This document shows positions 6,585-63,773 of a DNA stretch of 64,000 nucleotides, one piece after another. Both the position numbers and the translations under genes were made by a program. The notes beneath the pieces are model-generated. The model did no database searches. It had not been told where the DNA came from and was given only the letters and a program-made list of their open reading frames with translations. The stretch covers positions 159,507 to 223,506 of IMG/VR virus record IMGVR_UViG_3300038465_000091. One strand, given 5' to 3'. The number at the start of each line of letters is the position of its first letter. Within the stretch, counting starts at the first letter, position 1.

Positions 6585-9043
6585 TGGCCGATCAGAAGAC
6601 AACGCACTACAATGGCTACACTCTGAGTTACGCCAGTCAGCATGAGTCAGTGATTATTAAGTTGGACGGCAAGAAAGTTAAAACAGCACCAAACCTAGAA
6701 AAGGCGAAGGCGTGGGTGAATCAAGCGCCGGGAAGCTTTAGTAAGGGCGAGAAAAAGGCTGGTACGCTAATGGCAAAAGAAATAGTTCATTGCACAAAGT
6801 GCGGCAACATGATCGAGTCGCTCAAGCCTGAAAAATGTGAGCATTGTGGTGGCAAAGCAAAAGTTAAGAAGGGCTCTATGAAATCAAAACTAGCAGCAGC
6901 AAAAGCGGCACTTGACCGCAAGCAGGCCGATTTGGACGCTATTGACGACCAGATCATGGGTCTGGACTCTGGTATCCCAATGGATGCCCCATCTACCCCC
7001 GAATTTGACCTCCTCACTGCGAAGCGCGAAGAGCTTGAAGAAGAGATTCGCACGATGCGCGAAGGCGTTCAGTTTATCTCCGAGTGGGAAAAATTGAAGG
7101 GCGGACAGTGGTCGGAAGGTATCAAATCCCAGTTGGACGGCCTCGACTCAGAAATCGCCAATATAGCTGGCAGCGAGGGTGCCGTTGAGTCGGGTATGGA
7201 TATGGGAGCCCCGATGGGCGATCCCCTAGCCGCCCCGCCAGTTCCCGAAGCCCCAGTAGCACCAATGGGAGACGTGGCCCCTGAAGCCGCCCCAGCACCA
7301 GAAGTGGCACCCGATGCCGCCGCACCAGAAACACCCGCACCTGCCTTGGAACCTCCGATGGCGAGCGCAAAATCCGCAGTAAATAAGAAAAATAACTATC
7401 AAACCTCTCAAAAGAGGGGCAATATTGCCTCTCCCCAGATGAAAAAGGAAGGCTCCAACATGGCAAATCCTACAGCTACCAAGCCCTCGAACTTGAAAGA
7501 GAAGCTTGCTGAACTGAAAACGAAGCGCGAGACGATCAAGAGGGAAGCACAGGTTCGCACCGCTGCGGCGTATACAATCGCCAACACGATGCTGCCGGGT
7601 GCCCCCGTCGAAAAGCGTCAGGCATTCGCCTCTTCGCTACTCCAAGGTAACGACACCAAAGCCCTCGTTGCTGCCCTCCGTCAAACCGCGATCAACGCCC
7701 ACTACTCCAAGGTCGCCGAACAATTCAAGGAAGTCCACAAAGTCGAACTCAATGATCTCCTCGAAGACCCGTCCGTTCTGAAGTCCGAGCGTTCGGCTGT
7801 CGAAAAGGAAATCAAGGGTGACGCGAAGTCGGCTACCTCGAAGAAGGCCGATGACCGCAAGGACGCAGGTCCGCAGACCGAGACGTACAACGACGGTCGT
7901 GGTTGCGGCGGCGGGACTCACTCTGAGCCGAAGGAAATGGAAGCCTCGAAAGCTGGCGACCGTCCCGACGCTGGCGAGAAGCCCGGTCAGACCGTGAACC
8001 TCAGCGACGGCAAATCTGCCGCCGCAAAGAAGTCAACATGCAAGGACGGCGAGAAATGCGCGGGTTGCGAGAACTGCAAGTCCGCCGCCAAGAAAGCCGC
8101 CGAGAAGAAATGCGACAAGTGCAAGGGTGAATGTAAGTGCGCTTCCAAGGTCGTTGCCAAGGCAAAGAAGGCCGACGAGCCGCCGATGGACGCCCCCGCA
8201 CCAGATGCAGGCGCACCGCCGATGGAAGACGAAATGGGCGATGCAGGTGCTCCGTTGGATGAAGTTCCTCCGATGGACGGTATGGAAGGTGAAGCTCCAG
8301 TCGATGACGCTGGCGCGATCCTTACCGACGAGAAGAAGATGGTCGTTCAGGAGGAAATCGACACCGTTAAGGATGCCGTTCAAGCTCTTGAGCAGGAACT
8401 TCTTGAAGAGAACGAAGAAGAGATTCCGCTTGCTCTTGAAGAAGGCGAACCCTCCGAAGAAGAGCTTGACCTTTCGTCCGTGTTCGATCAGGGCGAGATG
8501 GAAGACAAAGCCGCTTCGCTTGCCAACGAAGGTGAAGATCACACCGCTGGCGACGACGGCGATGGTAACTTCTTCGCCCCAACATCTGCCGCAGGCATGG
8601 AATCAGTGCTTGACGACAGCGGTATGCAGGTAGCCAGTATCGAGAGCTATTTCGATATGCAGGGCTCCGATGCCGACCCACTGTACAGCTTGATCGCATC
8701 TGAAACCAAGGAAGCAGCATCCGTCGCTGGTTTTGACGTGCTTGAGTCCTTCACTGGTGAAGTGGCGAACAAGATGAAGCAGGACACCACTGGCGAAGCC
8801 CGCGACAACGAAGGCGACCACGACGAAGACCTCTTCGTCGAAGCAATGAAGGACATCAAGCCTGAGGAACAGGGTGCAAAGCGTACCCCGCAGGATGCAC
8901 GTCCCGAGTTGCAGGCTCCGAAGTCCGCAGCCGCAAAGACCGCAGCCAAGGCTCCCACAGGCAGCATCAAGCGTGTCCGCCCTGTCGTAGCCTCACCGAA
9001 AGCCGTTGACATCGCTACCGCGTTGTTCGGCTCCGAAGAGTAA
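6584..9043 (+). CDS. Capsid scaffolding / prohead core protein
   Basis: Coupled to the protease gene (TAATG); very acidic, coiled-coil and low complexity; canonical position between protease and capsid. Confidence 0.65.
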   Translation: MADQKTTHYNGYTLSYASQHESVIIKLDGKKVKTAPNLEKAKAWVNQAPGSFSKGEKKAGTLMAKEIVHCTKCGNMIESLKPEKCEHCGGKAKVKKGSMKSKLAAAKAALDRKQADLDAIDDQIMGLDSGIPMDAPSTPEFDLLTAKREELEEEIRTMREGVQFISEWEKLKGGQWSEGIKSQLDGLDSEIANIAGSEGAVESGMDMGAPMGDPLAAPPVPEAPVAPMGDVAPEAAPAPEVAPDAAAPETPAPALEPPMASAKSAVNKKNNYQTSQKRGNIASPQMKKEGSNMANPTATKPSNLKEKLAELKTKRETIKREAQVRTAAAYTIANTMLPGAPVEKRQAFASSLLQGNDTKALVAALRQTAINAHYSKVAEQFKEVHKVELNDLLEDPSVLKSERSAVEKEIKGDAKSATSKKADDRKDAGPQTETYNDGRGCGGGTHSEPKEMEASKAGDRPDAGEKPGQTVNLSDGKSAAAKKSTCKDGEKCAGCENCKSAAKKAAEKKCDKCKGECKCASKVVAKAKKADEPPMDAPAPDAGAPPMEDEMGDAGAPLDEVPPMDGMEGEAPVDDAGAILTDEKKMVVQEEIDTVKDAVQALEQELLEENEEEIPLALEEGEPSEEELDLSSVFDQGEMEDKAASLANEGEDHTAGDDGDGNFFAPTSAAGMESVLDDSGMQVASIESYFDMQGSDADPLYSLIASETKEAASVAGFDVLESFTGEVANKMKQDTTGEARDNEGDHDEDLFVEAMKDIKPEEQGAKRTPQDARPELQAPKSAAAKTAAKAPTGSIKRVRPVVASPKAVDIATALFGSEE

Positions 9044-10982: not shown

Positions 10983-11942
10983 ATGGCAAATCTTTCTCGT
11001 ACACAACAGCAGACGGCTATGCTTGGACAGTTGCTCAAGACCGCAGGTGGTCGTCAAAAATTAGCGGCGTCGTTGGGACCGTCCCTCCGTCGTCGTCGTG
11101 ACTATATGAGCATTGCTCGTAAGGCTCTTATGGTCGAAACTCTTCCCGATGGCGCACTCCCCATCTACGACAAGGAATTCGATGTTAGCGCGATGACTGT
11201 GGGCTCGACCCCCGGCTCGTCTTTCGTTGAAGCCTTTGTGGTCGGTGAAGAAGGCGGCGACATTGTGCGTGTGACCAAGCCAAAGCGTGTCACGGTTCCG
11301 ACGTTTGAAATCGTGTCCAACCCCATGATCCCGATCACCCAGATCAAGGAACGTCGTTTCGATCTCGTTGCTCGCTCACTCAACCTCGCAAAGGCTGAAG
11401 TAGGCGCGGCAGAAGATGGTTACGTGTTCAATCTGTTTGACGGTGTTGCGGCGGGCGCAGTCGGCCATGCACCAAACGATCCGGTTTACAACCCCGACAT
11501 TCCAATCAACGCCCCCATCGACATCAACTCGCTGGCGGATGGATTTGGTCAGGTTGCACGCCACGATCTGTCGGTTGCTTTCATCTTCTTCAATCCTCGC
11601 GATTACACGGATTTGTTGAAGTGGACGCAGCAAAACATCGACCGTGAAACACAGCGCAAGCTGTTGAAGACGGGCGTCATGGGCTATCTCTGGGGCGCAA
11701 CGCTCCTCCAGTCTCGTAAGGTCGGCTACGGCTGCATCTATATTCTGGCGGACGCTGAGTTCCTCGGCGTAATCCCAGAACGTATTCCGTTGACCGTGAT
11801 GAGTGCCGACCGTCCTGATTTGAGGCAAATCGGATTCTCGATATTTGAGAATTTGGGCTTCCTCGTCTTCAATCCTTCAGGCGTTCAGCGGTTGACCGTT
11901 AACGGTCGCTTCAACGCGGCTGCCAACTTCGGCGAGAACTAA
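10983..11942 (+). CDS. Major capsid protein (HK97 fold)
   Basis: AAGGAG RBS; RRDYMSIARKALMVETLPDGALPIYDKE...RVTVPTFEIVSNP.I...KERRFD...AAEDG...GYLWGA...GFSIFENLG; followed by a strong terminator. Confidence 0.88.
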   Translation: MANLSRTQQQTAMLGQLLKTAGGRQKLAASLGPSLRRRRDYMSIARKALMVETLPDGALPIYDKEFDVSAMTVGSTPGSSFVEAFVVGEEGGDIVRVTKPKRVTVPTFEIVSNPMIPITQIKERRFDLVARSLNLAKAEVGAAEDGYVFNLFDGVAAGAVGHAPNDPVYNPDIPINAPIDINSLADGFGQVARHDLSVAFIFFNPRDYTDLLKWTQQNIDRETQRKLLKTGVMGYLWGATLLQSRKVGYGCIYILADAEFLGVIPERIPLTVMSADRPDLRQIGFSIFENLGFLVFNPSGVQRLTVNGRFNAAANFGEN

Positions 11943-12694: not shown

Positions 12695-12732
12695 AGTTAT
12701 TCATCTACCTAACCATTAGGTGGGGGCGTCTT

Positions 12733-24000: not shown

Positions 24001-26950
24001 GCAAGCGCCAAGCGCGAACACGGTAGTTGCCCCACCGCCCGGAACGCCGATTGCTCTTCCCTCGGGACAAGGAGAAGATACACCGGAAAAAAGAACAGTT
24101 CCGCCAGAAATCCCGAACAGGAAGTACCACATGACAAGTAAAAATTCCGCACTTAAAACCGAACAGAATACGCCAGAGATGGAAGCTCAGGTAGCTCAAC
24201 TGGCACAAACGAACCCGCTCACGGAGATTCACGAGAACTGCAACCCGTACTTCGAGCACGGGCAATGGTGGGTTGTCTGCGGGCCGTGCGGAGCCACTTG
24301 GTCGGTCGTTGATGTGGGTCAGTTCATCGGAGATGAGGGCGACATCGACCTTGAAGAGATTGATAACGGTGACGGTTCTTGTGCGGAGAATTTCCACGAG
24401 TCTGCCGATCACAGCAGCCCACGTCAGGGCTTCATCTATCAGGCGGAAATGTGGTGCCCGACTTGTGCGAAGGAGATCGCCGCCGACATTCAGAAGAACT
24501 ACCCTAAGCAGGTCCCCGCCGATCCAACGGATGAGTATTCTTATGATTCCGACAGCTACCCGAAGGGACCGTTCTTCGAGGAAGAATCAGACGCTCCTGA
24601 GCACTGCGCGGGCTGCCACATTTTCCTTGAGAACCCTCTGACCACGCATGGTCAGGAGTACATGCAGTCGATGGTTGACGAAGCTCTGGCGAAGGGACGC
24701 GGCGAAGAGCCGCACATCAAGGAATGGATGGACTTTTACGGCTATCATCCTGACACTGAGGGAGCCGAAGACGAACATGAGGCGTCCGCCGCTTCCGACA
24801 GAATCAATGCGATGCCGCAGCGTGGCAAGCCAAAGACTCCCGAAGAGTTGGGGCTGGTTGAGAAATCCGATACGGAACTCCGTCTTGAGGGGATTCCTCC
24901 GCGTCCTAAGAAAACCGCCGATGGCGCTTCGTTGCTTGAACCAGAAGTTAGCTTCGAAGATAAACCAGACCCCTTGCTCGACAACAGTAATAATTTGCAA
25001 AACTACAGCTATGCACCGCAGAAAGACACAACAGATAGTAGGGACACGGCCACGCTGGACGACAACATCGAAATTTTGAAACGTTACGGCTATGCCCTTT
25101 TCAGTGGTGGAAAATCGGGTGGGAAACAATTCTGGAAAAGTCCCATTGGAACTGTAGTTATCATGTCCACCAGCGGTGAGTGGATGTTTGGTGCGGACGG
25201 TACCAGAGGAACGACCAGCACGGATTTAGACAGTAAGCTTTTGAAATACCACCACAAAATGGTCCCAAAAGCGGGGGCGTCCAAAACCGCCGAAATTGAT
25301 ATGGGTCAGCTTGAGAGCGTGCAGGATCGAAAAGATCGCCTGAGCAAGCCCGACAAGAGTCCGATGTACGGCGTGACACTTCTTCGCGAACTTTCAGCCC
25401 CCGGCATTCCAAAGGGTGAAGTGATCGTGTTCGGTTATTACTACCCAGATGGGCAATGGGGCAAGCAGCAGCTTCAATGGTGGACAACGATGGCGAAGAC
25501 CGAGTATGATAGCACCGTCACTCAGGTCAAACGTCGCAGTCGCGGTACGAATCAGGAAAAGTCAACGGCCCTGTACGAGTCGTTGAAAGGACGTGGTACG
25601 GCGGTTGAGCCGGGTACGTCGTCTGACGCTATCATCGAGCAATTCAAGACGCAGAAGGAATCATCCATGGAAAACAAACAGGCTGCAATCGCACAACCCA
25701 CGTCTGGCGAGGACGAAGGCTATTACGTCAAGGTCACCTACACTAAGGGCGGTATTGATCTGAGCCCGACTGAGAATCTTCTAAGGGAAGTCGCCGAGGA
25801 GCAAATGCAGGATGAAAGCGGCAACTCGACTTATGAGTTCGCCCACAACATTGAGCTTGACGACATCTGGGAAATGATGGAGGATTTCTTCACCAATGGC
25901 TGGGAGAAAGTAAATCCCGAGGATATTGGTGCGCTAACTGACGGAGAAATCTTCTCCGATCCCAACGGCAACGTCTACTGGCATGAGCGGTATCAGATCG
26001 AAAGCATGACCGATGAACTGAAGGCAGGCAACACGGTGTTCATGCAGTACGGCGGCAATCTGTTCGATGAGGAAGATGAAGAAACGCCTGCTCCCGATCC
26101 GAACCAGATGAACCTCCCACTCCAGTCTTCCAAGAAGGAAGCCACGGGCGAGATGAGTCAGTCCGAGGCTGATGACCGTGAGGCATGGCCGATGCACCAC
26201 GCTATCGCTGACGCTCTGGGCGGCACGGTCAAGGCTTTTGACCAGTATCAAGGTCCGTACGTTCTTGTGGGCTCTGAGGCTCGCGGACAGGGCACCTATG
26301 CTCCCGCAATCCCGATGAAGGGTACCGTGCGCCTCTGGGTACAGGCGGACGAGGGTAGTGACGGGGCATTCCTGACCGTCTACAACGAAGACAACGATAA
26401 AGTTAGCGAGCCGTTCCATTGGGAAGACATGGAAGGCGCGGTCAATGCCGCCATGAGCGTAATGGGCGATGAGCCCGAGACAATCGAAGCCTCCACCAAG
26501 CAGGCGGAACTTGACATCCCCAAACCGGACAGTTGGGGGTGTACTTGTTCAGATAAAGGAGCACGCGGACAACACAAGTCCAATTGTCCTAAGGCTCCGA
26601 AGCAACGTGGCGAGTACCACGGCGCGAGTAAGCAAGCAGCGCCCGGCGACGGTGGACTACAACGCGACGTGCAGAACCAGTACGAGAACCACCCCCTGAT
26701 CGAAATGCTGTGGGGTTCCCTGAAACGTGACCCAGCGAACAAAGATCGCGTCCAGACGGCATGGGGCACCAAGACGAAGCAGGGTTTGGTGCTCAGTGTA
26801 GCTCGCGCCATGAAGGAAAGCCCCGTCTCGGGTAAAGAAAGCAGTCAGAAATGCAAATGCGGCAAACCGACAGCTAAAGGCGATCACCGCTGCGAGGACT
26901 GCCGCTCAAAACAGCATTCCGAGGCAGAAAAAGCGACTGGCGTAGAATAA
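21047..26950 (+). CDS. Giant mosaic polyprotein 1 (1967 aa), putative virion cargo
   Basis: AAGGAGG RBS; about 390-aa helical N-terminal domain followed by more than 20 short unrelated modules (many CxxC) separated by KTA/KEA/KQA/KES/HES/HEA. Confidence 0.75.
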   Translation: MKLDATQAAAAKLSHLIEPGRTVYSTDGHAYRVLSKIAAGGSLSFRLANLQGQPVPIPADFSPIDGARMRFASFLKFAFNKDLTAIVNSLIEQAGLPTDPAMNWAGWFQKVYGEILASVTPNFDLQDEIMYNTVIKLLMMRKDKDGKTLLENAADKISGLSSGINKIKRQLRDPNLTPDEKKTLENRLHWQEKVKADPVEKQVSSLLKKTFEYYARHHARVDAKNYAYSVHTPSHRLETENIEDVAIEQPTPSGEGTYNILDTEEHGVAPGVGLGESERDIMQFIDQFQEWVRGKETPKSAPNYAELLRIYWDQAQRIDDVKISDLTQEWIRRTGLSFDSLKQYRDKLGILIRDFVYENKVQLGNSYKFVDLLKHMFPPPKQKARPAKASSDHHHDRTECRKCGNVQTCRCPATKVTSYVASCDNCKTADGLEARVLDPNCPEYKKYADDLIRRFGQTSQVSEMLGQFEDEHFPTCVHCQQYNQDWRAGKVSAAKPKCPHCGSDDYGLMPTDFETAKCNGCGKNWNHGIVKGINDPKEAARTADDEGGGKTCENCGSYYGGYTCLNCGRKKKLEEEVDRTSKELKKFPKGPTGMTPDDVKATPEWQAAKRNYGQAFAKLREFNSKKCAADDPTRDTLDETLKYDNPDKDTKGFHDPADLGQCACEWDECPLGHQAGGCQNPAAHMLEIYGYKTRYCQPCTDATIEYIRLEQGTGDPDDTVKILSSAHTAGAPYCDGCDRLKANCICEGCECPENKNAGKWGDKIKKMEARRGEFIEKTLKNAVGPTEEDDLEMARRGPIQYEELPEMETRIRPREEQSKFPTPRPTTRRKEGMLGHDFVDADQQAIRPDITPGDTGRLPHGRTQGSVKESAELAGRGGDKDDVRGAGDLWREEFYQSGNAPPKIATSGKWKVLLRDSKGNQREQEVSGVNYGSAERAVRKYMKNGERVVSMTIASKTAAPAPAAPAQAQAPAPAPAPAATPAPPAQAPSANTVVAPPPGTPIALPSGQGEDTPEKRTVPPEIPNRKYHMTSKNSALKTEQNTPEMEAQVAQLAQTNPLTEIHENCNPYFEHGQWWVVCGPCGATWSVVDVGQFIGDEGDIDLEEIDNGDGSCAENFHESADHSSPRQGFIYQAEMWCPTCAKEIAADIQKNYPKQVPADPTDEYSYDSDSYPKGPFFEEESDAPEHCAGCHIFLENPLTTHGQEYMQSMVDEALAKGRGEEPHIKEWMDFYGYHPDTEGAEDEHEASAASDRINAMPQRGKPKTPEELGLVEKSDTELRLEGIPPRPKKTADGASLLEPEVSFEDKPDPLLDNSNNLQNYSYAPQKDTTDSRDTATLDDNIEILKRYGYALFSGGKSGGKQFWKSPIGTVVIMSTSGEWMFGADGTRGTTSTDLDSKLLKYHHKMVPKAGASKTAEIDMGQLESVQDRKDRLSKPDKSPMYGVTLLRELSAPGIPKGEVIVFGYYYPDGQWGKQQLQWWTTMAKTEYDSTVTQVKRRSRGTNQEKSTALYESLKGRGTAVEPGTSSDAIIEQFKTQKESSMENKQAAIAQPTSGEDEGYYVKVTYTKGGIDLSPTENLLREVAEEQMQDESGNSTYEFAHNIELDDIWEMMEDFFTNGWEKVNPEDIGALTDGEIFSDPNGNVYWHERYQIESMTDELKAGNTVFMQYGGNLFDEEDEETPAPDPNQMNLPLQSSKKEATGEMSQSEADDREAWPMHHAIADALGGTVKAFDQYQGPYVLVGSEARGQGTYAPAIPMKGTVRLWVQADEGSDGAFLTVYNEDNDKVSEPFHWEDMEGAVNAAMSVMGDEPETIEASTKQAELDIPKPDSWGCTCSDKGARGQHKSNCPKAPKQRGEYHGASKQAAPGDGGLQRDVQNQYENHPLIEMLWGSLKRDPANKDRVQTAWGTKTKQGLVLSVARAMKESPVSGKESSQKCKCGKPTAKGDHRCEDCRSKQHSEAEKATGVE

Positions 26951-49732: not shown

Positions 49733-49733
49733 C

Positions 49734-54831: not shown

Positions 54832-54832
54832 C

Positions 54833-55453
54833 ATGCTGATTTACAAGCTCACAAATCGAATCAACGGTGGGGTCTACATCGGCAAATATGTCGGAGATGA
54901 GGCAGACGCTCGTTTTCAACAGCACGTTCGCGAAGCGAGACGGGGTGGGGATCGTTACCTATGCCGCACTATTCGCAAGTACGGCTCGGATGCCTTCAAG
55001 GTCGAAGTGATTTATCGTGCCAAGACCGCTGATGAACTCTCCAAGATGGAGACCTTTTTCATCGTTCTCCATCAAAGTCATAAAGTTGAGAACGGCTACA
55101 ACATGACGCTGGGCGGTGAGGGAACTGTGGGCCGGATTATTTCGGAAAGAACAAGACAGCTTTGGAGTGAGCAGCGTAAAGGAAGACCTGTCACAGCGCA
55201 ACAGTTGAAAAACCTAGCTCTTGGGCATCATCGACCGAAAAAAATAGTTGCGGTTAAACCCGCCGAAGAAGTGGAAGCCGCAATGAAAGCAGCGATGCGG
55301 GCTGCATGGACTCCCGAACGTAGGGCAGCACAAGCACAGCGGATAGCAAATCGGAATCGTCTTCGTGTTGGAAAACGTGGAGCATTATCTACGGAATGGA
55401 AGATGGCGATTTCAAATGCAAAGAAGGGGAAAGCAGCTTCGGCTGCGGCATAA
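54833..55453 (+). CDS. GIY-YIG homing endonuclease
   Basis: LIYKLTNRINGGVYIGK...METFFIVLHQS.KVENGYNMTLGG. Confidence 0.88.
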   Translation: MLIYKLTNRINGGVYIGKYVGDEADARFQQHVREARRGGDRYLCRTIRKYGSDAFKVEVIYRAKTADELSKMETFFIVLHQSHKVENGYNMTLGGEGTVGRIISERTRQLWSEQRKGRPVTAQQLKNLALGHHRPKKIVAVKPAEEVEAAMKAAMRAAWTPERRAAQAQRIANRNRLRVGKRGALSTEWKMAISNAKKGKAASAAA

Positions 55454-55457
55454 ACCT

Positions 55458-57545
55458 ATGGCAGACGAGAAGAAACCGTACAGCAGCATCGTTGACGCAT
55501 TCTTGGACGACCGCGAGCCCGAATGGAAGGACCTCGGCTTGAAGGACGCACAGGACTCAGGCGAGGAACAGTTGGATCGCTCTCACCAGTACGTCGATAA
55601 AGAGTTTGTGGACGAGATCGCGGAATCCGCCTCTCACCACACCCCTCTGTGGCCCGCTCGCACGGGCTCTGCCGAGAAGAATGCTCAGCGAGAACGTCTG
55701 GAGCGTGCCCGTGGCACCCACTTGGACCGCATGACAGCCAAGGATCAGCACTTTAGCGGCGTCGGTGGTTCGGATCAGAACTGGCGTGTACAGGCTACTC
55801 AGCACCCCGAAGATTACAGCACGAAGCTGGGCGACGACGATTCGCTGTTCGCGGAAGTTACGGAAACGTTGGAATCAGCAGCCTCATCGGGCAAGGTTGA
55901 GAAGAAGAACGTGTCGGACGCACAGGTTCAGAACTACGTCCACGCCCTGCTCAATCAGGGCATGGCACCTTCGAAGATCGCCGCGAAGCTCAAGAAGCTG
56001 GCTGAGATTGAGTTATTCAATCACCAGATGGCGACTCAGTACCTACAAGAAAATGCGGGACTCGTTGGGATGGCGTTCCTAGAGCCCAATACCTACATGG
56101 ACAAAAACTCCCCGACTTATGAACGAGAGAAGCACGGCAGCGCAGGTGAGAACAAGGAATTTGATACAAGTACAGTCGAAGGTCTCAAGGCAGCGGAGAG
56201 CTATAAGTCGAGGCTAGAAAATAAATACGATAGCGTTATCACTAAGTCTATCGGTCTCGACCGCGTTCGAATTACTGGAGGTCCATCCAAACAAGCAAGT
56301 TCGAGCAACGATTGCGTTCGTCAGCACGAGCAGTGGAAGAATGCGGGCATCACACCACGGGCGGCATCTGTAAAGCAGATCAGCGCGTGTACCGGATGTC
56401 AGTATTTCTCGAAGAACGGTAGCTCCAAGACCTGTGGTCTCTACCACTTACCAGTGGTGGGCAACACGGCTGAGCTTTCACCCATCGTGAACAAGCTGAC
56501 CGCAGGCGTGCCGAACAAGCAGAAGCGGGCGGCTTTGGTCCAGATCGCCAATGGCAATGGCACCAAGGTTGGTTCCATGCCCATCGCTCCGAAGACAAGC
56601 GCATCTGTCTCTCGTCACCCGAGTCTTGGCAGCGTAGAAGCGCAGGCGAAGCGCGTGGGCCGCACAGTAACGGCGGACTTCGATTCTTCGCACGTTGCAG
56701 CGTTGCATGAGAAGGGTCATTCGCTAAAGGCTATCTTCCGTGCGGCTGATAAACAGTTCGGTGCGTTTGCAGCAGGCAAGGCGCTACGTGAGTTCGTTGG
56801 CAGCCTGAGACCAAACGTCAATGGGCAGATCGTTCTCGCGAAAGTTGATGCGGAATTCCTCGCCAAGGCTGGGATGCATAATCAGAATTTTGTGGCGGGT
56901 GCAAAGTGTGCATCCTGTGCGACACATTCGGCGGCGGTGCAGAAGCACAAGTCAGCGGCGAATGTCGATTACATCTCTCGGGTTCCGCACACGGGATTCC
57001 AAGAGAGTAACCCCGATCAGGTACGTCACGCACACCGTGCGAGCAAACCCGAGCTTGATGCCAGCGTCATCGAGCGGTATCATAAGAAGGGGCACCCGCT
57101 GGAAAAGATTTACAAGCAGGCAGCGTCCAAGTTCGGCACCGCCCAAGCAAGCAAAGCCGTGAAGGAATTCATCGCCAGTCTGAAGCGTAAGCCAATCAAG
57201 GTTGCGCTGAGTCAGATCGACTGCTCGTTCCTTAAGAACAAACTGGCCGATCACAATCCGATTATTGGGGCACATAAGTGCGGCTCTTGTACGTATCGCA
57301 AAGGAATGCACTGCGGTCTGACGGGTGGTACGCTCTTGAGCTTCCCCGGTATGGACAAAACGTCGTCCAATCACAAGATTGGGGAAGGTGCGCCAGAGGA
57401 TGGGCGTACCATTCTTGCGGAGTTTGACTTGATGTCGAATTCAGGGCGTCCGGGCGACACGAAGATGGCCGACATCGAAATGAACACGGACAGACCCGAT
57501 GATACTCATCTGGGGAGTCATTTTGAAATGGGAGACATAGAGTAA
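55458..57545 (+). CDS. Putative head protein with a duplicated Zn-binding domain and K-x-A sites
   Basis: Internal repeat HEKGHSLKAIF..A.KQFG...A..EFV.SL...GAKCASC versus HKKGHPLEKIY..A.SKFG...A..EFI.SL...GAHKCGSC. Confidence 0.7.
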   Translation: MADEKKPYSSIVDAFLDDREPEWKDLGLKDAQDSGEEQLDRSHQYVDKEFVDEIAESASHHTPLWPARTGSAEKNAQRERLERARGTHLDRMTAKDQHFSGVGGSDQNWRVQATQHPEDYSTKLGDDDSLFAEVTETLESAASSGKVEKKNVSDAQVQNYVHALLNQGMAPSKIAAKLKKLAEIELFNHQMATQYLQENAGLVGMAFLEPNTYMDKNSPTYEREKHGSAGENKEFDTSTVEGLKAAESYKSRLENKYDSVITKSIGLDRVRITGGPSKQASSSNDCVRQHEQWKNAGITPRAASVKQISACTGCQYFSKNGSSKTCGLYHLPVVGNTAELSPIVNKLTAGVPNKQKRAALVQIANGNGTKVGSMPIAPKTSASVSRHPSLGSVEAQAKRVGRTVTADFDSSHVAALHEKGHSLKAIFRAADKQFGAFAAGKALREFVGSLRPNVNGQIVLAKVDAEFLAKAGMHNQNFVAGAKCASCATHSAAVQKHKSAANVDYISRVPHTGFQESNPDQVRHAHRASKPELDASVIERYHKKGHPLEKIYKQAASKFGTAQASKAVKEFIASLKRKPIKVALSQIDCSFLKNKLADHNPIIGAHKCGSCTYRKGMHCGLTGGTLLSFPGMDKTSSNHKIGEGAPEDGRTILAEFDLMSNSGRPGDTKMADIEMNTDRPDDTHLGSHFEMGDIE

Positions 57546-58070
57546 ATGGCAACTCGATACAATTACGAAGTCGGCACGGACGGCAGTACCAAGGAAGATC
57601 GCATTCCGGGCAAGCGTGAGACTAGCTCCAAACTGAGTGAGATTCGGGCAAAGATCGAAGACCCGAATGTCAGTCAGGCTGAACTCAGCAAGCTCATCGC
57701 TCTTGAAATGGCGGCGATTCTGGATGGCATGAACGAGCATCTGGACAGCCCGAACTCATCTATCAAGGGCATGGAATCTAACTTCGCCATCAAGAGTCTC
57801 AGCGAACAACTGAAGGGTGTTCGCGAACTCGGTCGTCAGATCATTGAGATGGACAACCAAGCGAAGCGCGATTTCATCAACTTCGACGGCGAGAAATTCC
57901 AGTTCGTCGCAGGTCAGTGGATGCAGATGGGCGTTGCAGCCCTCCGTGCTATGGGCTGGGATGAGCACACGGTCACCCAGTACGTTAAGCAGTTCCGTAG
58001 CCAGATCGAATTGAACGAACTCCGCATTCGTCGTGAAGCGGAAAACGTCGGCACAAACAAACAGAAGTAA
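57546..58070 (+). CDS. Helical hypothetical protein
   Basis: 174-aa ORF coupled to the previous gene. Confidence 0.7.
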   Translation: MATRYNYEVGTDGSTKEDRIPGKRETSSKLSEIRAKIEDPNVSQAELSKLIALEMAAILDGMNEHLDSPNSSIKGMESNFAIKSLSEQLKGVRELGRQIIEMDNQAKRDFINFDGEKFQFVAGQWMQMGVAALRAMGWDEHTVTQYVKQFRSQIELNELRIRREAENVGTNKQK

Positions 58071-58085
58071 CGAAGGGGAACGAGC

Positions 58086-61000
58086 ATGGCTAATAGCGTT
58101 AGTGGCAACTCAATTGCAAGCAAGAGCTTTCAGAGTCTAGCTATCTCAGAAGCATTGCTGAGCAAGACTGTCGAAGCGATTAAAGCGGGCGAAAAGGAAG
58201 CGCGGTCCACCGGGGTCCCTCAATCCTTCGAGGCCATGTATCGCGGGTTCAGGCAGAATATTGCCATCGGTAAAATTGTAGTTGTTCCTCCCGCCGTCGC
58301 TGACAAAAAGGGGCAGGATTTCCCCACGGCGCTTCTTTACGGCTGCCTTGTTCGCACTTTCGGTGGAGAAGAGATGGGCGATCTCATTTCTCACAAGATT
58401 GGTGATAGCGAATGGGACGAATATTCACAAGCTTCGTACAGTTCCATTAAAGAAGAACTGTTCGGCACGGAGGATGGTAAGTTTGCTTGCCTTGTGCTAT
58501 TTATTCCCAATTGGGTCAACAAGCGTGAGTACGTCGGCTTCCAGTTTCCGAAAGACGACAACCAGCTTACGAACCTGACACGCCATTTGGTCTTCAGTTC
58601 GTACTTCGACCCCCGCCTGTCTTCGGCATTCGATGCTATGATGACTGACGTGGAGACCTCGAAGTTCGATGTCACAGACATCACGCCGAAGCTGAATTTC
58701 CCAGCCTTGGCTGAGAATCCGCTGAAGGAATACCCGTTGCTCACCAAGGAAGGTTCACAGAAAAAGCCCCGCCTCGGACTGACCATCAAAACCGCCGATG
58801 AAGTCACCAAGGCTGTCTTGGAACCGCAGGAGATGGATGTGTTCGAATCTCTGGACACGGCTCTTCGCAACAGCCTCCTGCCAAGCGATTCCAAGGGCGT
58901 TGAGGATGCTTCCGAGGGTAAGGCTCCGACAAAGGGTGAAATGGTTCCGCGTCTCTCATCTAAAGAGGCCGAGTACCAGCCAAAAACAGGTCAACCCTGC
59001 ACTTGCCGCCCGGGTGTCCAACGTGACAACTGCCCGCAATGTGAAGGCACGGGACAGCGTATTGACTTCGCCGCTATCCGAAAGCAGAATGGTCCCAAGA
59101 GTGGTTCCACCAAGGTTGCTCACGGCTACATCGCTTTCTACGGCAACAAGCGCGTAGAAGTTCAGGCTGACACTCTCTGGGGCGCAAAGCAAAAAGCCAT
59201 CGAGATGTTGAAAGTTCCGAAGTCTAAGCAAGGGTTGCTCGCCATAGAACTTGCCGAAAAAGACGGAGAACAGGTCACCACAACAATCACGTCGTCCGCC
59301 ACTGCGGTATTCGAGACCCCGATTACAAACGTTGGTCCGGGCACCGAAGCTCACGACGAAGCCAACCAACGCACCGAAGGCTACAAGGATGAGAAGGACA
59401 CGCCAAAGGCTGTCATCAATAGCGCACCGATTGGTATCGCTCTCGACGAGACTGGCGTACCACGCCGTGCCGAGGAAGAGCGTAAGGAAAAGTCCGCCGC
59501 TCGGAATTTTTACAAACCGCCTACCGACCCTCAGGCCGAGAACGTCAAGGTTGTGGAGAACCACAAATACACCCAGTTTAACGAAAAACCAGACGGAACC
59601 TCGTACTGGAAGAGCCCCATCGGAACTACCGCTGTCCTGTACCCGAACGGAAGCTGGATGCACACGGGCGGCAAGGGAGATGGACCCAACGCTCTTAGCG
59701 AGCTTCTCATCAGCTATCACCACGAGAGGGTTCCGAAGGTCGGGAAGACTGCCGCTTATGGCGACCGTCGCGACTATCCGAAGATCGACCTATTCGTTAA
59801 CGGTGAGTACGTCGCAAGCACGACATGGGCGAGCAACATCAAGGAAGCGATCCAAAAGTACGAGGAAAAGAACCCCGGCCCGTGGGCTGGTGAAGTCAAG
59901 GCTCAATACGACAAGCGGGCTTCCGATAAGCAGGCGAAGCGCGTCGAGGGTCTCACTTCGACGGGGGATGTCGAACGTCTCGCGGCACAAACTCAGGAAG
60001 ATGATCTGAGCGCATCTGCAAGTGCGGCATGGGATGCAGCCCGCAAGGGCGGTAAAGAGGCTAAAGAGGGTCTCGAAAAACACGCCGACAAGATGAAGGA
60101 GTACGCTTCCAGCTTGAGCCAAGACAATCAGGCTCATCACGCGGTAGCCGATCACAAGAAGGAGATTGCCGCAGGTAAGTACGGGCCGACTCCACTGTCA
60201 ATCTCATCCTCGGAAAAGGATAAGGCGACCGATCCCCAAGCTGTCCGCGACCACATCAAGAAGAACGTCAGTCAGGCTCGTCAGGGTCAGGACGCTTTGA
60301 AGGATCACCATGCGTCCTTCGACGCCGAAAAATGGGGCGGGCTGGGCAAGAAGCAAGCCTCCGCTCTGTGGGTAGGCTCTGCTAAGAAAATCGCCGCTGA
60401 ATTCGACGAATTCACTCATGGCTATATCGAGACCGCTTTGTGGTCTTCGAATGATGAGTCCGATCCTAGCGGCGGACAGCCGTTGGATGCAAACTACGAC
60501 ATTCGCGACCTATCTCCGTCTTGCTTGCAGGCGATGACCGAAGATTGCGCTAAGTTCCAAGCGGAGAACGCCGAGCTTTTGGCTGCGGCATCCGAACAGG
60601 ATGGTCAGGACGGATTCCGTCAGGGTCATGATTTCTGGCTCACCCGCTGCGGTCATGGTGCGGGCTACTGGGATGGTGATTACCCGACAACGGGTGATGG
60701 CTTGACCGAGGCGTCCGAGGCATGGGGCAACGTGGACATCTACGTTGGCGACGACGACATGATCTATCAGTACGGTTCCGAAACAGGCGTAAGTGAGAAG
60801 TTCCCATCACACCAAGGACCCATGGCTAGTTCCAAGAAGGCTTCCAAGAAGACCGCTTCGCAAAACGATGCGTCCTACATTGCCAGCTTGATCGGTGGTG
60901 GATTTGGCGGCGAAGATTACGACGCTCGCTCGCAGCACTCCAAGACGGCTGCACAGAAGCGTGAAGACGAGATGGCTCGCAAGTATTCCTCTCAGCGCAA

Positions 61001-63773
61001 GAAGTTCGCCGACGTTCCTCAAGACATCGACGATATTTGGTCCGAGACGATGGAAGACATGGGGCCAGCCCCCGAGATTAGACTCCCGGGCGAAAGTATG
61101 GACAATGAAAAGTCCACCACGGGGGAACACGAGATCGAAGCTCCTGAGATGAGCGCAGACTCAAGAAGTGACGTTCCCGAGCAGGTCAAGGGCGATCAGG
61201 AAGAGCCGACCGTAAAGGTTGAAGAGGCTCTTGAGAACGATACCACCAAGTCCGAAGAAGACGAGCCGAGCACGGGCGACGATGGGGCATCGGCGGACTC
61301 GAAAGAACCGAAGTCCGAAGGTGGGAAGTCCGAATGGTCGAAGAATCGCAGCAAGGGTAAGTCAGAAAAGAAAGACGAACCAAAGGAAGAGAAAGAGTCC
61401 AAGGAAGCTTCGAAGATGGCAGCCGCCAACTCCAGACCCCGCCAGCGTGTCCATTGCGACCGCTGCGAGATGCTGAGTATTAACGGCACCGCAACCCACG
61501 AAAGGGGTTGCCCCAACCAGAATTCTCGTTGGGATTCCACTCGACAGGACTGGGTAAAGCAACGTAGGTGCGCTGAATGCGGAATGGACGTTGACGCGGA
61601 CGATCCGTGTTGTTCTGCGGAGCCTTCATTCGATGAAGACGAGGGACGTTTCGCTGGACTCGACACCATCCTTGCCGATGGTAACGAGACGGCACTGGAC
61701 CAAATGGAAGAAGCTCAAGCAACGGCACCCGCAGTATTCTACGAGTGCGGTGCCTGTGGCGGCGTTCACCCATCTTTAGAGACTTCTGAGAAGCTCGGAC
61801 TCGGCTGGAATGGCGACTGTCGCGATGAGAATGGTCATTTCGAAGAGAGTGACGTTCCTTTCGGAGACAACACCCAGCTCATCTCTTTGGATGAACAGAT
61901 GGCTCCAGATTTCGACGACACGATTCTGGCGTCGGGAGAATCCAAGACGGCGGACGGTGAACAGTTCTGTACCGAATGTGGACGCCCGATATCCCTCGAT
62001 ATGGACAGTGAGGGTGTCTCGCACCACTTAACCGATCTCGGTGAGATCGATTTCAATGCGGACGCTGACCATGTGGCTTTGGCAGAACAATTTGATGGTG
62101 GGCTTGAACAGTTCATGGAGCCCGGACACGAAGAGTCTGAGAATCCGTTAGCTGAACTTGACCAACTCATGGAGCCCCAGCACAAGCGTCGTCGCTCGTC
62201 TGAGGAAAAGACGGCAGATTATGCCGAAGATGATTTCGCATCTTACTTCGGAGAAGCGGGGAAAATTCAAGCAAATTACGCGGAAGGTGATGAGTTTCGG
62301 CTGTCTGAAGATGCCCTTGAAAATTACGGGGAAGAATATCGAGATGGGGTTTTTACAGTTGATGCAGTGTACGACCATTATGTTCCTTCATCATCGATGG
62401 GAAATGATCGGACAGGATCGCCCGGTTTCGATGAAAGTGCAGGCACCGCTCTTTACGGGTCAGAGTTGAATTTCGACGTGTATGAGTGGGAAATGGAGCC
62501 CGCAAACGCTGGGCACGAAGCATCCATTAAGCAGGCAGATACCGCTGACAATCCAGCAAACGAAGCGGACGGCGAAGGTGCCATCGAGGTCAAGACGGCT
62601 GGTCGCTCCTCTACACCGAAGTACGTGATTCGTATTCCGGGCTCTACCGACGCTGCGTGGAACGTGACTGGTTACGGGCAACAGCGCGGTGCAGGTCAGC
62701 CAAATCAAGCGAACCTCGCACGGTACATGGAAGCTCTTCTGAAGAGCATGGAACCCGGTGGGCATAACGAGCATCTGGTGGGGCATTTCGATCCAACCGA
62801 AGCTGCGATTTACCCCAACAACGGCACCTACAAGGACCCATTGGCTACATGGTCAAAGGAAGATGAGATTTATCCCAGCGATGCCGACAACGACAAAGCT
62901 CTCAAAGAAATTGAGAGTTCTGATGTAAGCGGCGACTTCTCGGAAGCTAATTCTGAGGTTGAAAGCCCAGACACAGTTGACACGGACATCAAGCAGCCGA
63001 CTGAATCGGTAGGCGAAGCTGGTAAGCACGCGGCTGACATCTCGGGGGATATCTCTGAGGCTAAGTCGGAAGTTGATTACAACAAGGCGGACGTTGCGGA
63101 CGAGGCACAGGCGACGGATACAGTTAACCCAGACCATTTCGCCGCTGAGCAAGAGTATTGGGATAAAGAAGCGGCGGATGGGTACGAAGTCCCTTCACAA
63201 TACCGTAAGGATTCCGCTGAGGACGATGCGGAACCCGCTGATGAGGAACCAGACGAGCAGCCCGCTGAGGTTGAGGACTCCGATGAGGGACCTGCCGATG
63301 AGGACAAGCCAGCAGCTAAGCCCGCCGAAACTGAAGACGAGCCTGCTGTGAAGAAGCAGACTGATGAGTCAAAGGGCAAGAACAAGCCCGCCGAGACTCC
63401 GGCTGCGGACGCGAAAGCGCCTGCGGCAGCACCAGCCGCACCCGCAGCGGCTCCAGCAGCACCAGCAGCAGTGGCTCCAGCGGCAGTAGCCGCTCCAGCA
63501 GGTGCGGGTGGAAATGGAACCTCGGAAACTTCGGGCAACGAAACATCGACCGAAACTGGCGGCTCAAGTCCGGGCGGTGCATCAACCGGCGGCGTAGGTA
63601 GCGGCATGGGTGGTGCAGTGGTCGCGGAACTCGGCACCGATGCACTTAACGCACATCAAGCTGATGATAAAACAGCGTGTGCAGGTTACGGCGATGAGGA
63701 AGATGAAGAACGCCGCATCGACTCGGGACTCGGAGACCTTGGCGATTTAGTTGTGGAGAAGGAAATCGACTAA
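58086..63773 (+). CDS. Giant mosaic polyprotein 2 (1895 aa), putative virion cargo
   Basis: About 230-aa globular N-terminal domain followed by many modules split by KTA/KEA/KVA/KSA/KQA/KIA/KFA/KMA/KHA; acidic tail. Confidence 0.75.
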   Translation: MANSVSGNSIASKSFQSLAISEALLSKTVEAIKAGEKEARSTGVPQSFEAMYRGFRQNIAIGKIVVVPPAVADKKGQDFPTALLYGCLVRTFGGEEMGDLISHKIGDSEWDEYSQASYSSIKEELFGTEDGKFACLVLFIPNWVNKREYVGFQFPKDDNQLTNLTRHLVFSSYFDPRLSSAFDAMMTDVETSKFDVTDITPKLNFPALAENPLKEYPLLTKEGSQKKPRLGLTIKTADEVTKAVLEPQEMDVFESLDTALRNSLLPSDSKGVEDASEGKAPTKGEMVPRLSSKEAEYQPKTGQPCTCRPGVQRDNCPQCEGTGQRIDFAAIRKQNGPKSGSTKVAHGYIAFYGNKRVEVQADTLWGAKQKAIEMLKVPKSKQGLLAIELAEKDGEQVTTTITSSATAVFETPITNVGPGTEAHDEANQRTEGYKDEKDTPKAVINSAPIGIALDETGVPRRAEEERKEKSAARNFYKPPTDPQAENVKVVENHKYTQFNEKPDGTSYWKSPIGTTAVLYPNGSWMHTGGKGDGPNALSELLISYHHERVPKVGKTAAYGDRRDYPKIDLFVNGEYVASTTWASNIKEAIQKYEEKNPGPWAGEVKAQYDKRASDKQAKRVEGLTSTGDVERLAAQTQEDDLSASASAAWDAARKGGKEAKEGLEKHADKMKEYASSLSQDNQAHHAVADHKKEIAAGKYGPTPLSISSSEKDKATDPQAVRDHIKKNVSQARQGQDALKDHHASFDAEKWGGLGKKQASALWVGSAKKIAAEFDEFTHGYIETALWSSNDESDPSGGQPLDANYDIRDLSPSCLQAMTEDCAKFQAENAELLAAASEQDGQDGFRQGHDFWLTRCGHGAGYWDGDYPTTGDGLTEASEAWGNVDIYVGDDDMIYQYGSETGVSEKFPSHQGPMASSKKASKKTASQNDASYIASLIGGGFGGEDYDARSQHSKTAAQKREDEMARKYSSQRKKFADVPQDIDDIWSETMEDMGPAPEIRLPGESMDNEKSTTGEHEIEAPEMSADSRSDVPEQVKGDQEEPTVKVEEALENDTTKSEEDEPSTGDDGASADSKEPKSEGGKSEWSKNRSKGKSEKKDEPKEEKESKEASKMAAANSRPRQRVHCDRCEMLSINGTATHERGCPNQNSRWDSTRQDWVKQRRCAECGMDVDADDPCCSAEPSFDEDEGRFAGLDTILADGNETALDQMEEAQATAPAVFYECGACGGVHPSLETSEKLGLGWNGDCRDENGHFEESDVPFGDNTQLISLDEQMAPDFDDTILASGESKTADGEQFCTECGRPISLDMDSEGVSHHLTDLGEIDFNADADHVALAEQFDGGLEQFMEPGHEESENPLAELDQLMEPQHKRRRSSEEKTADYAEDDFASYFGEAGKIQANYAEGDEFRLSEDALENYGEEYRDGVFTVDAVYDHYVPSSSMGNDRTGSPGFDESAGTALYGSELNFDVYEWEMEPANAGHEASIKQADTADNPANEADGEGAIEVKTAGRSSTPKYVIRIPGSTDAAWNVTGYGQQRGAGQPNQANLARYMEALLKSMEPGGHNEHLVGHFDPTEAAIYPNNGTYKDPLATWSKEDEIYPSDADNDKALKEIESSDVSGDFSEANSEVESPDTVDTDIKQPTESVGEAGKHAADISGDISEAKSEVDYNKADVADEAQATDTVNPDHFAAEQEYWDKEAADGYEVPSQYRKDSAEDDAEPADEEPDEQPAEVEDSDEGPADEDKPAAKPAETEDEPAVKKQTDESKGKNKPAETPAADAKAPAAAPAAPAAAPAAPAAVAPAAVAAPAGAGGNGTSETSGNETSTETGGSSPGGASTGGVGSGMGGAVVAELGTDALNAHQADDKTACAGYGDEEDEERRIDSGLGDLGDLVVEKEID

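Follow-up and report, generated by a model that had tools for sequence, protein, structure and literature searches.

Here we describe a 1,895-residue protein of a soil jumbo phage that strings together at least six small units, each matching a free-standing mini-gene of other phages or plasmids, and in which the units are joined by a recurring Lys-x-Ala (K-x-A) motif that is probably a capsid-protease cut site, suggesting that these proteins are delivered ready-made with the DNA. The protein is encoded by ORF 58086..63773 (+) of the 64,000-nucleotide stretch analysed (hereafter, the window), which is a single uninterrupted frame with an ATG start. The phage is a jumbo myophage related to Tunturiibacter phage Tunturi_5 (PP885688) and, more distantly, to phage G. 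The original prediction held that five compact units begin right after K-x-A in this ORF, and this observation is confirmed at all five places (a slash marks the junction): KVA343-345/HGYIAFYG at nt 59121, KTA554-556/AYGDRRD at nt 59754, KIA768-770/AEFDEF at nt 60396, KMA1110-1112 nine residues before the CDRCEMLSING unit at nt 61422, and KTA1503-1505/GRSSTPKY at nt 62601. The parts of the polyprotein and the related features of the window are as follows.

58086..63773 (+), the whole polyprotein ORF, 1,895 aa, a homologue of Tunturi_5 gp350.
58086..58796 (+), conserved N-terminal domain (aa 1-237), the family signature, which ends in KTA/D in 48 of 57 relatives; proposed carrier or targeting part.
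58971..59120 (+), small zinc-finger unit (aa 296-345) with a DnaJ-like CxxCxGxG, lying between KEA and KVA; absent from the relatives L003, L007 and L010, while another relative, P0021, has Pfam DnaJ_CXXCXGXG.
59121..59285 (+), HGYIAFYG module (aa 346-400), a member of phrog_19202 that matches 61-aa free-standing ORFs of N4-like phages; preceded by K-[VT]-A in 4 of 4 relatives and in a different position in L007.
59499..59753 (+), ARNFYK module (aa 472-556), bounded by KSA/ and KTA/; among close relatives it occurs only in the window and L003.
59754..59921 (+), AYGDRRD module (aa 557-612), which matches free-standing 57-64-aa ORFs in other viral contigs; absent from L007.
60396..60770 (+), AEFDEF module (aa 771-895), a member of phrog_1915, co-extensive with 114-128-aa free-standing phage proteins and predicted to fold as a compact helical domain.
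61002..61085 (+), conserved motif KFA/DVPxDIxDIWSExxEDMGPAP, shared with Tunturi_5 gp350 and found in 37 family members.
61422..61646 (+), cysteine-rich module (aa 1113-1187) that follows KMA and matches many 52-180-aa free-standing proteins.
61953..62216 (+), DGEQFCTECG zinc-ribbon-like unit (aa 1290-1377) between two KTA sites; absent from L003, L007 and L010.
62274..62507 (+), NYAEGDEF...YEWEM module (aa 1397-1474), which comes after a 16-aa spacer and the junction GKIQA/ and matches 79-87-aa free-standing ORFs over their full length.
62601..62861 (+), GRSSTPKY module (aa 1506-1592), in which residue 1506, the first after KTA, aligns with residue 2 of 78-99-aa free-standing ORFs; K-x-A lies directly upstream in 5 of 5 relatives.
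63618..63770 (+), conserved acidic C-terminal tail (aa 1845-1895), following low-complexity Asp/Glu- and Pro-Ala-rich spacers.
5682..6584 (+), head maturation protease and candidate processing enzyme, with K-I-A at aa 5-7 and KMA-KIA near the C-terminus.
6584..9043 (+), 819-aa ORF in the scaffold position, between the protease and capsid genes.
11037..11045 (+), KTA at residues 19-21 of the major capsid protein (LLKTA/GG).
25061..25291 (+), paralogue of the ARNFYK module inside the first polyprotein (ORF 21047-26950), which also ends ...VPKxGxxKTA/.
55365..58070 (+), two upstream genes (726 aa and 174 aa) that accompany the polyprotein in every relative (Tunturi_5 gp348 and gp349).

To examine whether K-x-A is more than a product of composition, we compared its frequency with that in shuffled sequences. 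K-x-A occurs 30 times in the polyprotein against 15.1 +/- 3.6 in 2,000 shuffles, none of which reached 30, and K-[TS]-A occurs 9 times against 2.1. Across 73 family members, K.A is the second most enriched X.Y pair (1,404 observed, 771 expected), with Thr and Gln favoured in the middle position, Asp, Cys, Ser or Ala favoured after the Ala, and Ser favoured at the two positions before the Lys. The edges of BLAST homology blocks pile up on the motif, with block starts falling on the K 304 times against about 80 for random positions, and block ends falling on the A 235 times against about 110. Not every K-x-A is a junction, however, one junction reads K-I-Q-A, and the Lys and Ala of the motif are only modestly better conserved than other Lys and Ala residues (55% versus 41% and 56% versus 51%, respectively). 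The codons at the motif vary (for KTA: AAA-ACC-GCC, AAG-ACT-GCC, AAG-ACG-GCG and others), indicating that the signal is in the protein and not in the DNA, and a DNA-level recombination signal at the junctions was rejected on this basis.

To determine whether the units correspond to independent genes, which had been set beforehand as the test of the prediction, we searched the inter-motif segments separately. Six segments, comprising all five named units and the NYAEGDEF unit, match free-standing ORFs of about 57-130 aa end to end, and these ORFs start within 0-14 residues of the position after K-x-A, whereas the opposite outcome, matches only to internal parts of equally long proteins spanning the motif sites, was not seen. 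In the clearest case, the stand-alone M-GRSxTPKY aligns with KTA/GRSSTPKY. For the AEFDEF module, aa 771-894 match positions 7-139 of the 141-position phrog_1915 profile (E=2e-23), and the module is co-extensive with a 127-aa Klebsiella phage protein. For the HGYIAFYG module, aa 347-391 match positions 16-60 of the 61-position phrog_19202 profile (E=4e-8 on the isolated piece), and the module is co-terminal with a 61-aa ORF of an N4-like phage. A tblastn search of aa 925-1649 against isolated phages gave no match, and the free-standing relatives of the modules in this region appeared only in a library of 1.84 billion proteins, where, of 147 new representative hits to aa 1113-1605, 137 are 200 aa or shorter and 139 start with Met. 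Word-seeded searches for free-standing relatives of the AYGDRRD and ARNFYK pieces found nothing, and their Atlas hits were at chance level (0.63-0.72); the AYGDRRD relatives were then found by a pattern scan of viral contigs, while no free-standing relative of ARNFYK was found. The stand-alone relatives sit in arrays of tiny same-strand ORFs typical of phage accessory regions, and one, a relative of the Cys-rich unit, sits in a conjugative element.

A nucleotide search of the ORF against isolated phages gave no match. In Pfam, no hit at E<=0.1 for the whole protein or at E<=1 for the ten pieces scanned reached a curated cut-off, and nothing was found in NCBIfam or PADLOC. The AlphaFold2 model of the AEFDEF module predicts with high confidence a compact stand-alone fold (pLDDT 94.9, pTM 0.89) but has no fold match in PDB. 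The N-terminal domain gave only a moderate model (pLDDT 64), with no significant Foldseek match in PDB or BFVD.

Comparison of relatives that are 80-95% identical in shared parts revealed whole-module insertions and deletions and one reordering, with breakpoints that fall on K-x-A. Pfam-defined domains in other family members (Xre_MbcA_ParS_C, DUF7249) also follow K-x-A. The capsid protein is 86-100% identical across 80 contigs, while the polyprotein N-domain is only 63-87% identical in some of the same contigs and the polyprotein length ranges from 1,061 to 2,249 aa, which fits an arms-race cargo.

Analysis of the other genes of the window linked the motif to the head proteins. K-x-A is located at aa 19-21 of the capsid protein, where Tunturi_5 has LLKSA/AG at the same place, although phage G has E-T-E there, so that this site is not universal, and the capsid N-termini of 80 relatives were too conserved to be informative about the motif. 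In the protease, K5 and A7 of the N-terminal K-I-A are invariant in Tunturi_5 and phage G, and the final Ala of the C-terminal KMA-KIA is invariant in all three, with K at P3 in the window and Tunturi_5. The scaffold-position ORF contains 23 K-x-A against 12.2 expected and 7 K[TS]A against 1.4, and the larger of the two genes upstream of the polyprotein contains 14 against 6.5. Taken together, the motif is enriched 1.86-fold in seven head-module or cargo candidates (111 versus 59.8), a grouping that was partly post hoc, but 0.93-fold in the other 44 ORFs (39 versus 41.8). The pattern repeats in the independent genome of Tunturi_5, in which gp332 in the scaffold position (16 versus 5.6, z=5.0), gp328 annotated as a DNA ejection protein (z=3.9), gp348 (z=4.4) and gp350 (P=0.013) are enriched, while the tail sheath gp326 and the tail fibre gp337 are not (z 0.5 and -0.6) and the second fibre gp342 is only weakly above expectation (z=1.5). 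In Tunturi_5, the polyprotein gene lies at the end of the same-strand virion-gene block. The protease, a candidate processing enzyme of unassigned class and specificity, had no Pfam match and no PDB sequence match, and the literature on phage G gave no experimentally mapped cleavage site for comparison.

With moderate confidence, we interpret the ORF as a fast-evolving cargo polyprotein, with a conserved N-terminal domain of about 235 aa, a conserved acidic C-terminal tail and, between them, a variable string of at least ten small units of 50-130 aa, each joined to the next by a spacer ending in K-x-A, preferably Ser-Ser-Lys-Thr/Gln-Ala followed by Asp, Ser, Ala or Gly. In this view, the precursor would be made late together with the virion proteins and taken into the prohead, where the head maturation protease would cut after the Ala of K-x-A, which for the GRSSTPKY unit would recreate the N-terminus that the free-standing protein has after loss of its initiator Met. 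The released small proteins would then be ejected with the DNA and act before any phage gene is expressed, with counter-defence or host takeover as the most likely role. The analysis itself establishes the ORF, its modular architecture, the homology to small free-standing ORFs, the junction motif with its enrichment and distribution, and the gain, loss and shuffling of modules at the motif, whereas cleavage, packaging, ejection and module function are inferred. There are no proteomic, N-terminal sequencing or structural data for any family member, and the paper on Tunturi_5 reports none. The original prediction, that early accessory genes were recruited in frame into a packaged carrier and delivered as protein, is thus partly supported. 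The free-standing families are far more widespread than the polyprotein family, which favours capture into the polyprotein, although this direction is inferred and some free-standing AYGDRRD relatives themselves begin MNRK-T/N-A. Packaging and protein-level delivery rest on indirect evidence only, namely the motif shared with head proteins and the location in the virion-gene block, the "early" nature of the source genes is only an inference from context, and an anti-defence role remains a guess, as no module has a known function; none matched a known anti-defence family.

Most small phage accessory genes have no known function. The occurrence of the same units both as free-standing genes and as in-frame beads of a probable capsid cargo suggests that they act at the very start of infection, marking them as strong candidates for counter-defence or takeover factors; one family member carries an antitoxin-type toxin-binding domain. 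If the K-x-A rule holds, it would define the specificity of a new prohead protease clade, provide a simple sequence rule for predicting virion cargo in soil jumbo phages and show a natural design for packing many different small proteins into a capsid, and the cultured Tunturi_5 with its Tunturiibacter host makes the idea directly testable. A further possibility, which we consider somewhat less likely than not, is that this clade has a general plug-in route that turns any small accessory gene into pre-made, injected cargo, in which insertion in frame behind a K-x-A spacer, between a fixed carrier and tail, lets the capsid protease release the protein with its native N-terminus. Dozens of different small effectors would then be swapped in and out of several such polyproteins (this one, ORF 21047-26950 and the gp328-like protein) on the time scale of strain divergence, forming a natural, programmable multi-protein delivery cassette and a catalogue of proteins that a phage needs before its first gene is expressed.

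Among the closest known systems are the polyvalent proteins of phages and conjugative elements (PMC5512222), which are likewise very large, mosaic and fast-evolving, combine two to fifteen otherwise independent domains that recur as stand-alone proteins or in shuffled combinations, are predicted to enter the host with the DNA and have been proposed to release domains by proteolysis. None of their hallmark domains was detected here (zincin-like metallopeptidase, ArdC-N, SNF2 helicase, methylase, ART or LPD families), there is no embedded peptidase, the units are tiny and non-enzymatic-looking, and the junctions carry a discrete short motif shared with the head proteins, which points to processing in trans by the prohead protease. 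The T4 internal proteins (IPI-III, Alt) and the phiKZ/201phi2-1/SPN3US inner-body or ejection proteins are packed in the head, cut by the prohead protease at a three-residue motif (L/I-x-E in T4; A-x-E or S/A/G-x-E in giant phages) that also marks the capsid, scaffold and protease proteins, and ejected into the cell, and T4 IPI is an anti-restriction protein (PMC10052503; PMC3012670). Those are separate genes, each with a propeptide that is removed, while here many cargo units with free-standing homologues in unrelated phages are concatenated in one precursor with a junction site before each, and the motif has Ala, not Glu, before the inferred cut. Phold labels Tunturi_5 gp350 as DarB-like; DarB of the phage P1 Dar system is also a large protein encoded with virion genes and proposed to be packed in the head to protect incoming DNA, but no methyltransferase or helicase domain and no sequence or fold match to DarB were found in the Pfam, PHROG and Foldseek searches, the last with the moderate N-domain model, and the label appears to be an over-extension. 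By analogy only, MuF-fused polymorphic toxins of temperate phages also join a cargo to a head-targeted carrier, but carry one C-terminal toxin domain, and polyproteins of RNA viruses and retroviruses release units at short protease sites separated by spacer peptides, but RNA-virus polyproteins encode the replication and structural core rather than swappable accessory genes. Herpesvirus assemblin, which shares a fold with phage prohead proteases, cuts after Ala with a defined residue three positions earlier (V/L/I-x-A followed by Ser), as is inferred here, although the residue at P3 is Lys in this phage rather than a hydrophobic one; the in-vivo C-terminus of PrV assemblin is Ala225 (PMC4498786).

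Among the alternatives, an uncleaved "beads on a string" polyvalent protein, packaged or not, whose modules act while tethered and in which K-x-A is only a preferred linker or capping sequence or a scar of module joining, is unlikely but survives best. Several polyvalent proteins, such as N4 virion RNAP and ArdC, are transferred unprocessed (PMC5512222), the linkers here are rich in Lys, Ala, Ser and Thr, and conservation of the motif residues is modest. However, the motif has position-specific preferences on both sides, homology-block edges fall on it exactly, it also occurs at the capsid N-terminus and the protease termini and is enriched in the scaffold-position gene, where a linker role makes no sense, and the cut would reproduce the native N-terminus of the free-standing GRSSTPKY protein. 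A cytoplasmic polyprotein that is never packaged, translated as one unit to co-express many small proteins in fixed amounts and cut in the infected cell by the phage or a host protease, as in RNA viruses, fits the modular architecture and junction motif equally well and is contradicted by no direct evidence of packaging, but it is doubtful given the motif shared with head proteins, the virion-gene block in Tunturi_5, the normal action of prohead proteases inside proheads (PMC10052503), and the conserved N-terminal domain and C-terminal tail around a variable middle, which look like handling or targeting parts.

A structural internal head protein, such as core, inner-body or DNA-organising material, whose modules have a structural role and from which the small ORFs would be shed fragments rather than captured accessory genes, is also improbable. 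In its favour, the N-terminus of the first polyprotein resembles Tunturi_5 gp345, annotated as a virion structural protein, one of its modules matches part of gp328, and the MNRK-T/N-A starts of some AYGDRRD relatives could be a relic of a polyprotein origin. Against it, phrog_1915 occurs in about 180 phage records, including phages of Mycobacterium, Escherichia, Caulobacter and Klebsiella, 91 of the 100 nearest Atlas clusters are small proteins with no common Pfam family (the three shown being viral), the Cys-rich unit also occurs in a conjugative element, and module content changes between phages with nearly identical capsid proteins, which is unlike a structural requirement. Finally, an artefact, in which separate small genes are fused by sequencing or assembly errors or a long ORF arises by chance, has no evidence in its favour and is refuted, since 73 homologues of 1,061-2,249 aa from independent samples, including a cultured phage isolate, keep the frame open, the modules lack start codons at their junctions, and no excess of promoters or terminators occurs inside the ORF.

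To define the architecture of the second polyprotein, we analyzed its reading frame and the distribution of the Lys-x-Ala (K-x-A) motif within it. The gene is a single 1,895-aa frame (58086-63773, + strand) with an ATG start and no internal stop. The observation in the original prediction, that compact units begin right after K-x-A, held, and all five of the junctions it named were found in place. K-x-A occurs 30 times against 15.1 +/- 3.6 in shuffles of the same protein, and K-[TS]-A occurs 9 times against 2.1. The codons used for the motif differ from site to site, indicating that the signal is selected at the protein level and is not a DNA recombination signal. In addition, the ORF shows no excess of promoter- or terminator-like sites, and there are no start codons at the junctions.

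The window has no nucleotide match among isolated phages. Its major capsid protein is 71% identical to that of Tunturiibacter phage Tunturi_5, a 309-kb jumbo myophage of an Acidobacteriota host from Arctic soil, and 35% identical to that of Bacillus phage G (PMC11924767). Comparison with Tunturi_5 revealed that the gene order matches, with the following features in the window:
5682-6584, head maturation protease, upstream of the capsid gene
6584-9043 (+), 819-aa ORF in the scaffold position, between the protease and capsid genes
10983-11942, major capsid protein
55365-57545, 726-aa ORF corresponding to Tunturi_5 gp348, and 57546-58070, 174-aa ORF corresponding to gp349 (together 55365-58070, +)
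58086-63773 (+), the polyprotein, corresponding to gp350
In Tunturi_5, gp350 is the last gene of a long same-strand block that holds the sheath, 'DNA ejection protein', protease, capsid and fibre genes. Phold labelled gp350 a 'DarB-like antirestriction protein', but we found no support for that label, as there was no Pfam or PHROG hit of that kind and no fold match for the shared N-terminal domain.

The source contig is a 223.5-kb IMG/VR contig, and eight further viral contigs carry homologues of the polyprotein. The large protein database holds 73 members of 1,061-2,249 aa, some on contigs of up to 894 kb. All members share the N-terminal domain of about 235 aa (34-86% identity to the window protein), and in 48 of the 57 relatives where the boundary could be read, this domain ends in K-T-A followed by Asp. 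Many also share a short DVPxDIxDIW...EDMGPAP motif and an acidic C-terminal tail, while the middle is highly variable. The capsid protein is 86-100% identical across the 80 contigs kept, whereas in some of the same contigs the polyprotein N-domain is only 63-87% identical and the protein length differs by hundreds of residues. The 726-aa and 174-aa genes precede the polyprotein in every relative examined. The larger of the two has two internal repeats with Cys motifs and is K-x-A rich, and both genes are candidates for packaging adaptors or further cargo.

To examine how the modules change, we aligned the window protein with three relatives that are 80-95% identical in shared parts, including those of the viral contigs L003 and L007. 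The differences are whole-segment insertions and deletions whose edges fall on K-x-A. The HGYIAFYG unit follows K-V-A in the window and L003, while in L007 it sits in a different place, again behind T-K-V-A. The ARNFYK unit, which begins after KSA and ends in KTA, is present only in the window and L003, the AYGDRRD unit is missing from L007, and the DGEQFCTECG unit between two KTA sites is unique to the window. L007 has an extra unit behind K-I-A. L003 and L007 (aa ~1180-1240) each have three tandem 17-residue spacers of the form KTA followed by DYAEGDLETYFDEG, each starting after KTA, and this spacer occurs once in the window (aa 1378-1393). Spacers of the ADISGDISEAKSE type also recur behind K-x-A in 36 members, and these may be extended recognition elements or spacer peptides.

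Family-wide analysis agreed with these comparisons. K.A is enriched 1.82-fold (1,404 vs 771) and is the second most enriched spaced pair, with Thr/Gln preferred in the middle, Asp/Cys/Ser/Ala after the Ala, and Ser before the Lys. BLAST block starts peak on the Lys (304 vs about 80) and block ends on the Ala (235 vs about 110), although the Lys and Ala of the motif are only modestly better conserved than other Lys and Ala. The named modules are preceded by K-x-A in other members, in 4 of 4 for HGYIAFYG, 5 of 5 for GRSSTPKY and 25 of 37 for DVPQDI; for AEFDEF, 7 of 18 are exact, and at least three of the others have K-[IV]-A 4-7 residues upstream. Pfam-recognisable domains were found in three other family members: an Xre/MbcA/ParS C-terminal toxin-binding (antitoxin) domain, DnaJ CXXCXGXG zinc fingers and DUF7249 (P0019 aa 949-999; P0021 aa 498-552 and 836-873; P0072 aa 1575-1667). 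The antitoxin and DUF7249 domains lie behind a K-x-A, which was not seen before the DnaJ fingers.

To determine whether the inter-motif segments have free-standing relatives, we searched them separately. The AEFDEF unit (aa 771-895) matches phrog_1915 over profile positions 7-139 of 141 (E=2e-23) and hits small hypothetical proteins in about 180 phage records, including phages of Mycobacterium, Escherichia, Caulobacter and Klebsiella. A 127-aa Klebsiella phage protein lying between promoters is co-extensive with it. Of the 100 nearest Atlas clusters, 91 have no common Pfam family, and they include 114-128-aa viral proteins. The unit is predicted to fold as a compact helical domain (pLDDT 94.9, pTM 0.89), with no relative in the PDB. 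The HGYIAFYG unit matches phrog_19202 and is co-terminal with 61-aa ORFs in small-gene runs of N4-like phages. For the three units in aa 1113-1605, an exhaustive phmmer search gave 343 hits, and of 147 new representative hits, 137 are 200 aa or shorter and 139 start with Met. Among these units, the Cys-rich unit matches dozens of proteins, most of them under 130 aa, the NYAEGDEF...YEWEM unit matches 79-87-aa ORFs over their full length, and the GRSSTPKY unit matches 78-99-aa ORFs whose residue 2 aligns with the first residue after K-T-A ('M-GRSxTPKY' against KTA followed by GRSSTPKY). The AYGDRRD unit matches 57-64-aa ORFs in other viral contigs. Some of its free-standing relatives (contigs L027, 3980-4174, and L029) begin MNRK-N/T-A-P and therefore carry a K-x-A just before the conserved core, which could be a relic of a polyprotein origin or a coincidence. 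The free-standing genes lie in arrays of tiny same-strand ORFs in phage contigs, and for the Cys-rich unit, one context is a locus with VirB8- and TraG-like genes, that is, a conjugative element. Matches only to internal parts of long proteins that span the motif, which had been named beforehand as the refuting outcome, were not observed.

No free-standing relative of the ARNFYK unit was found in our searches, but the unit has a paralogue (25061-25291) inside the first polyprotein of the window (21047-26950, +; 1,967 aa). The two copies share 35% identity, and both end ...VPKxGxxKTA. The N-terminus of the first polyprotein resembles Tunturi_5 gp345 'virion structural protein', its aa 1600-1666 match part of gp328 'DNA ejection protein', and K[TS]A occurs in it 5 times vs 1.4 expected. 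Several cargo polyproteins may exchange modules.

We next asked whether K-x-A is a protease site, a role that is inferred here from sequence alone, without proteomic data. The capsid protein has K-T-A at residues 19-21, and Tunturi_5 has K-S-A at the same place. The protease has K-I-A at residues 5-7, with K and A invariant in Tunturi_5 and phage G, and also KMA-KIA about 25 residues from its C-terminus; autoprocessing at the ends is usual for prohead proteases (PMC10052503). The 819-aa ORF in the scaffold position has 23 K-x-A against 12.2. This ORF is itself mosaic, with small Cys-rich and helical segments and Pro/Ala/Glu-rich spacers, and it may be a scaffold that also carries modules. Seven head-module or cargo candidates together have 111 K-x-A against 59.8, whereas the other 44 ORFs have 39 against 41.8, although this grouping was partly post hoc. 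The same grouping applied to the independent Tunturi_5 genome gave the same picture, with enrichment in gp332 (z=5.0), gp328 (z=3.9), gp348 (z=4.4) and gp350 (P=0.013), but not in the sheath (gp326, z=0.5) or one fibre (gp337, z=-0.6), while the second fibre (gp342) is only weakly above expectation (z=1.5). A short motif shared by capsid, scaffold, protease and internal cargo is the known signature of prohead protease substrates in T4 and in phiKZ-like phages, where it is A-x-E or L/I-x-E (PMC10052503). The related herpesvirus assemblins cut after Ala, and an Ala C-terminus is documented (PMC4498786). Against this reading, the class of the window protease could not be established, and where the capsid protein of this clade has K-T/S-A, that of phage G (gp27) has E-T-E, which may reflect a different protease specificity in the G lineage.

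In the most likely mechanism, the precursor would be made with the virion proteins and taken into the prohead, with the conserved N-domain, the C-terminal tail and the two conserved neighbouring genes as candidates for targeting. The head protease would then cut after each K-x-A, and the released small proteins would be ejected with the DNA to act before phage transcription. The sequence analysis itself establishes the modular frame, the homology to free-standing small genes and the changes of modules at K-x-A, while cleavage, packaging, ejection and the function of the modules are inferred. The interpretation in the original prediction, that early accessory genes were recruited in frame into a packaged carrier and delivered as protein, is therefore supported in part. 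We are highly confident that the segments are homologous to free-standing small genes and that K-x-A marks the junctions, and we consider it more likely than not that K-x-A is the prohead protease site and the protein is packaged cargo. A role of the cargo in counter-defence or takeover is a tentative suggestion. The only hints to the function of the modules are the antitoxin domain, which hints at neutralising host toxin-antitoxin defences, and the DnaJ-type zinc fingers in other members. The proposed mechanism combines the concept of polyvalent proteins (PMC5512222) with that of protease-processed internal proteins, and it differs from both in four ways: no hallmark polyvalent domains were detected and no embedded peptidase is present, many tiny accessory-gene-like units are concatenated in one precursor, a discrete junction motif is shared with the head proteins, and module turnover is rapid between phages with nearly identical capsids.

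Further genes were identified elsewhere in the window:
12691-13629 (+) and 54755-55453 (+), two GIY-YIG homing-endonuclease genes
47478-53028 (+), a cluster of two nucleotide-sugar epimerase genes, a methyltransferase and glycosyltransferases (GtrB-like hits)
The cluster lies upstream of the cargo genes and may modify host surface or phage components. The second homing-endonuclease gene is 100% identical at the protein level to the copy in L003, while flanking genes are only 66-87% identical, suggesting recent mobility.
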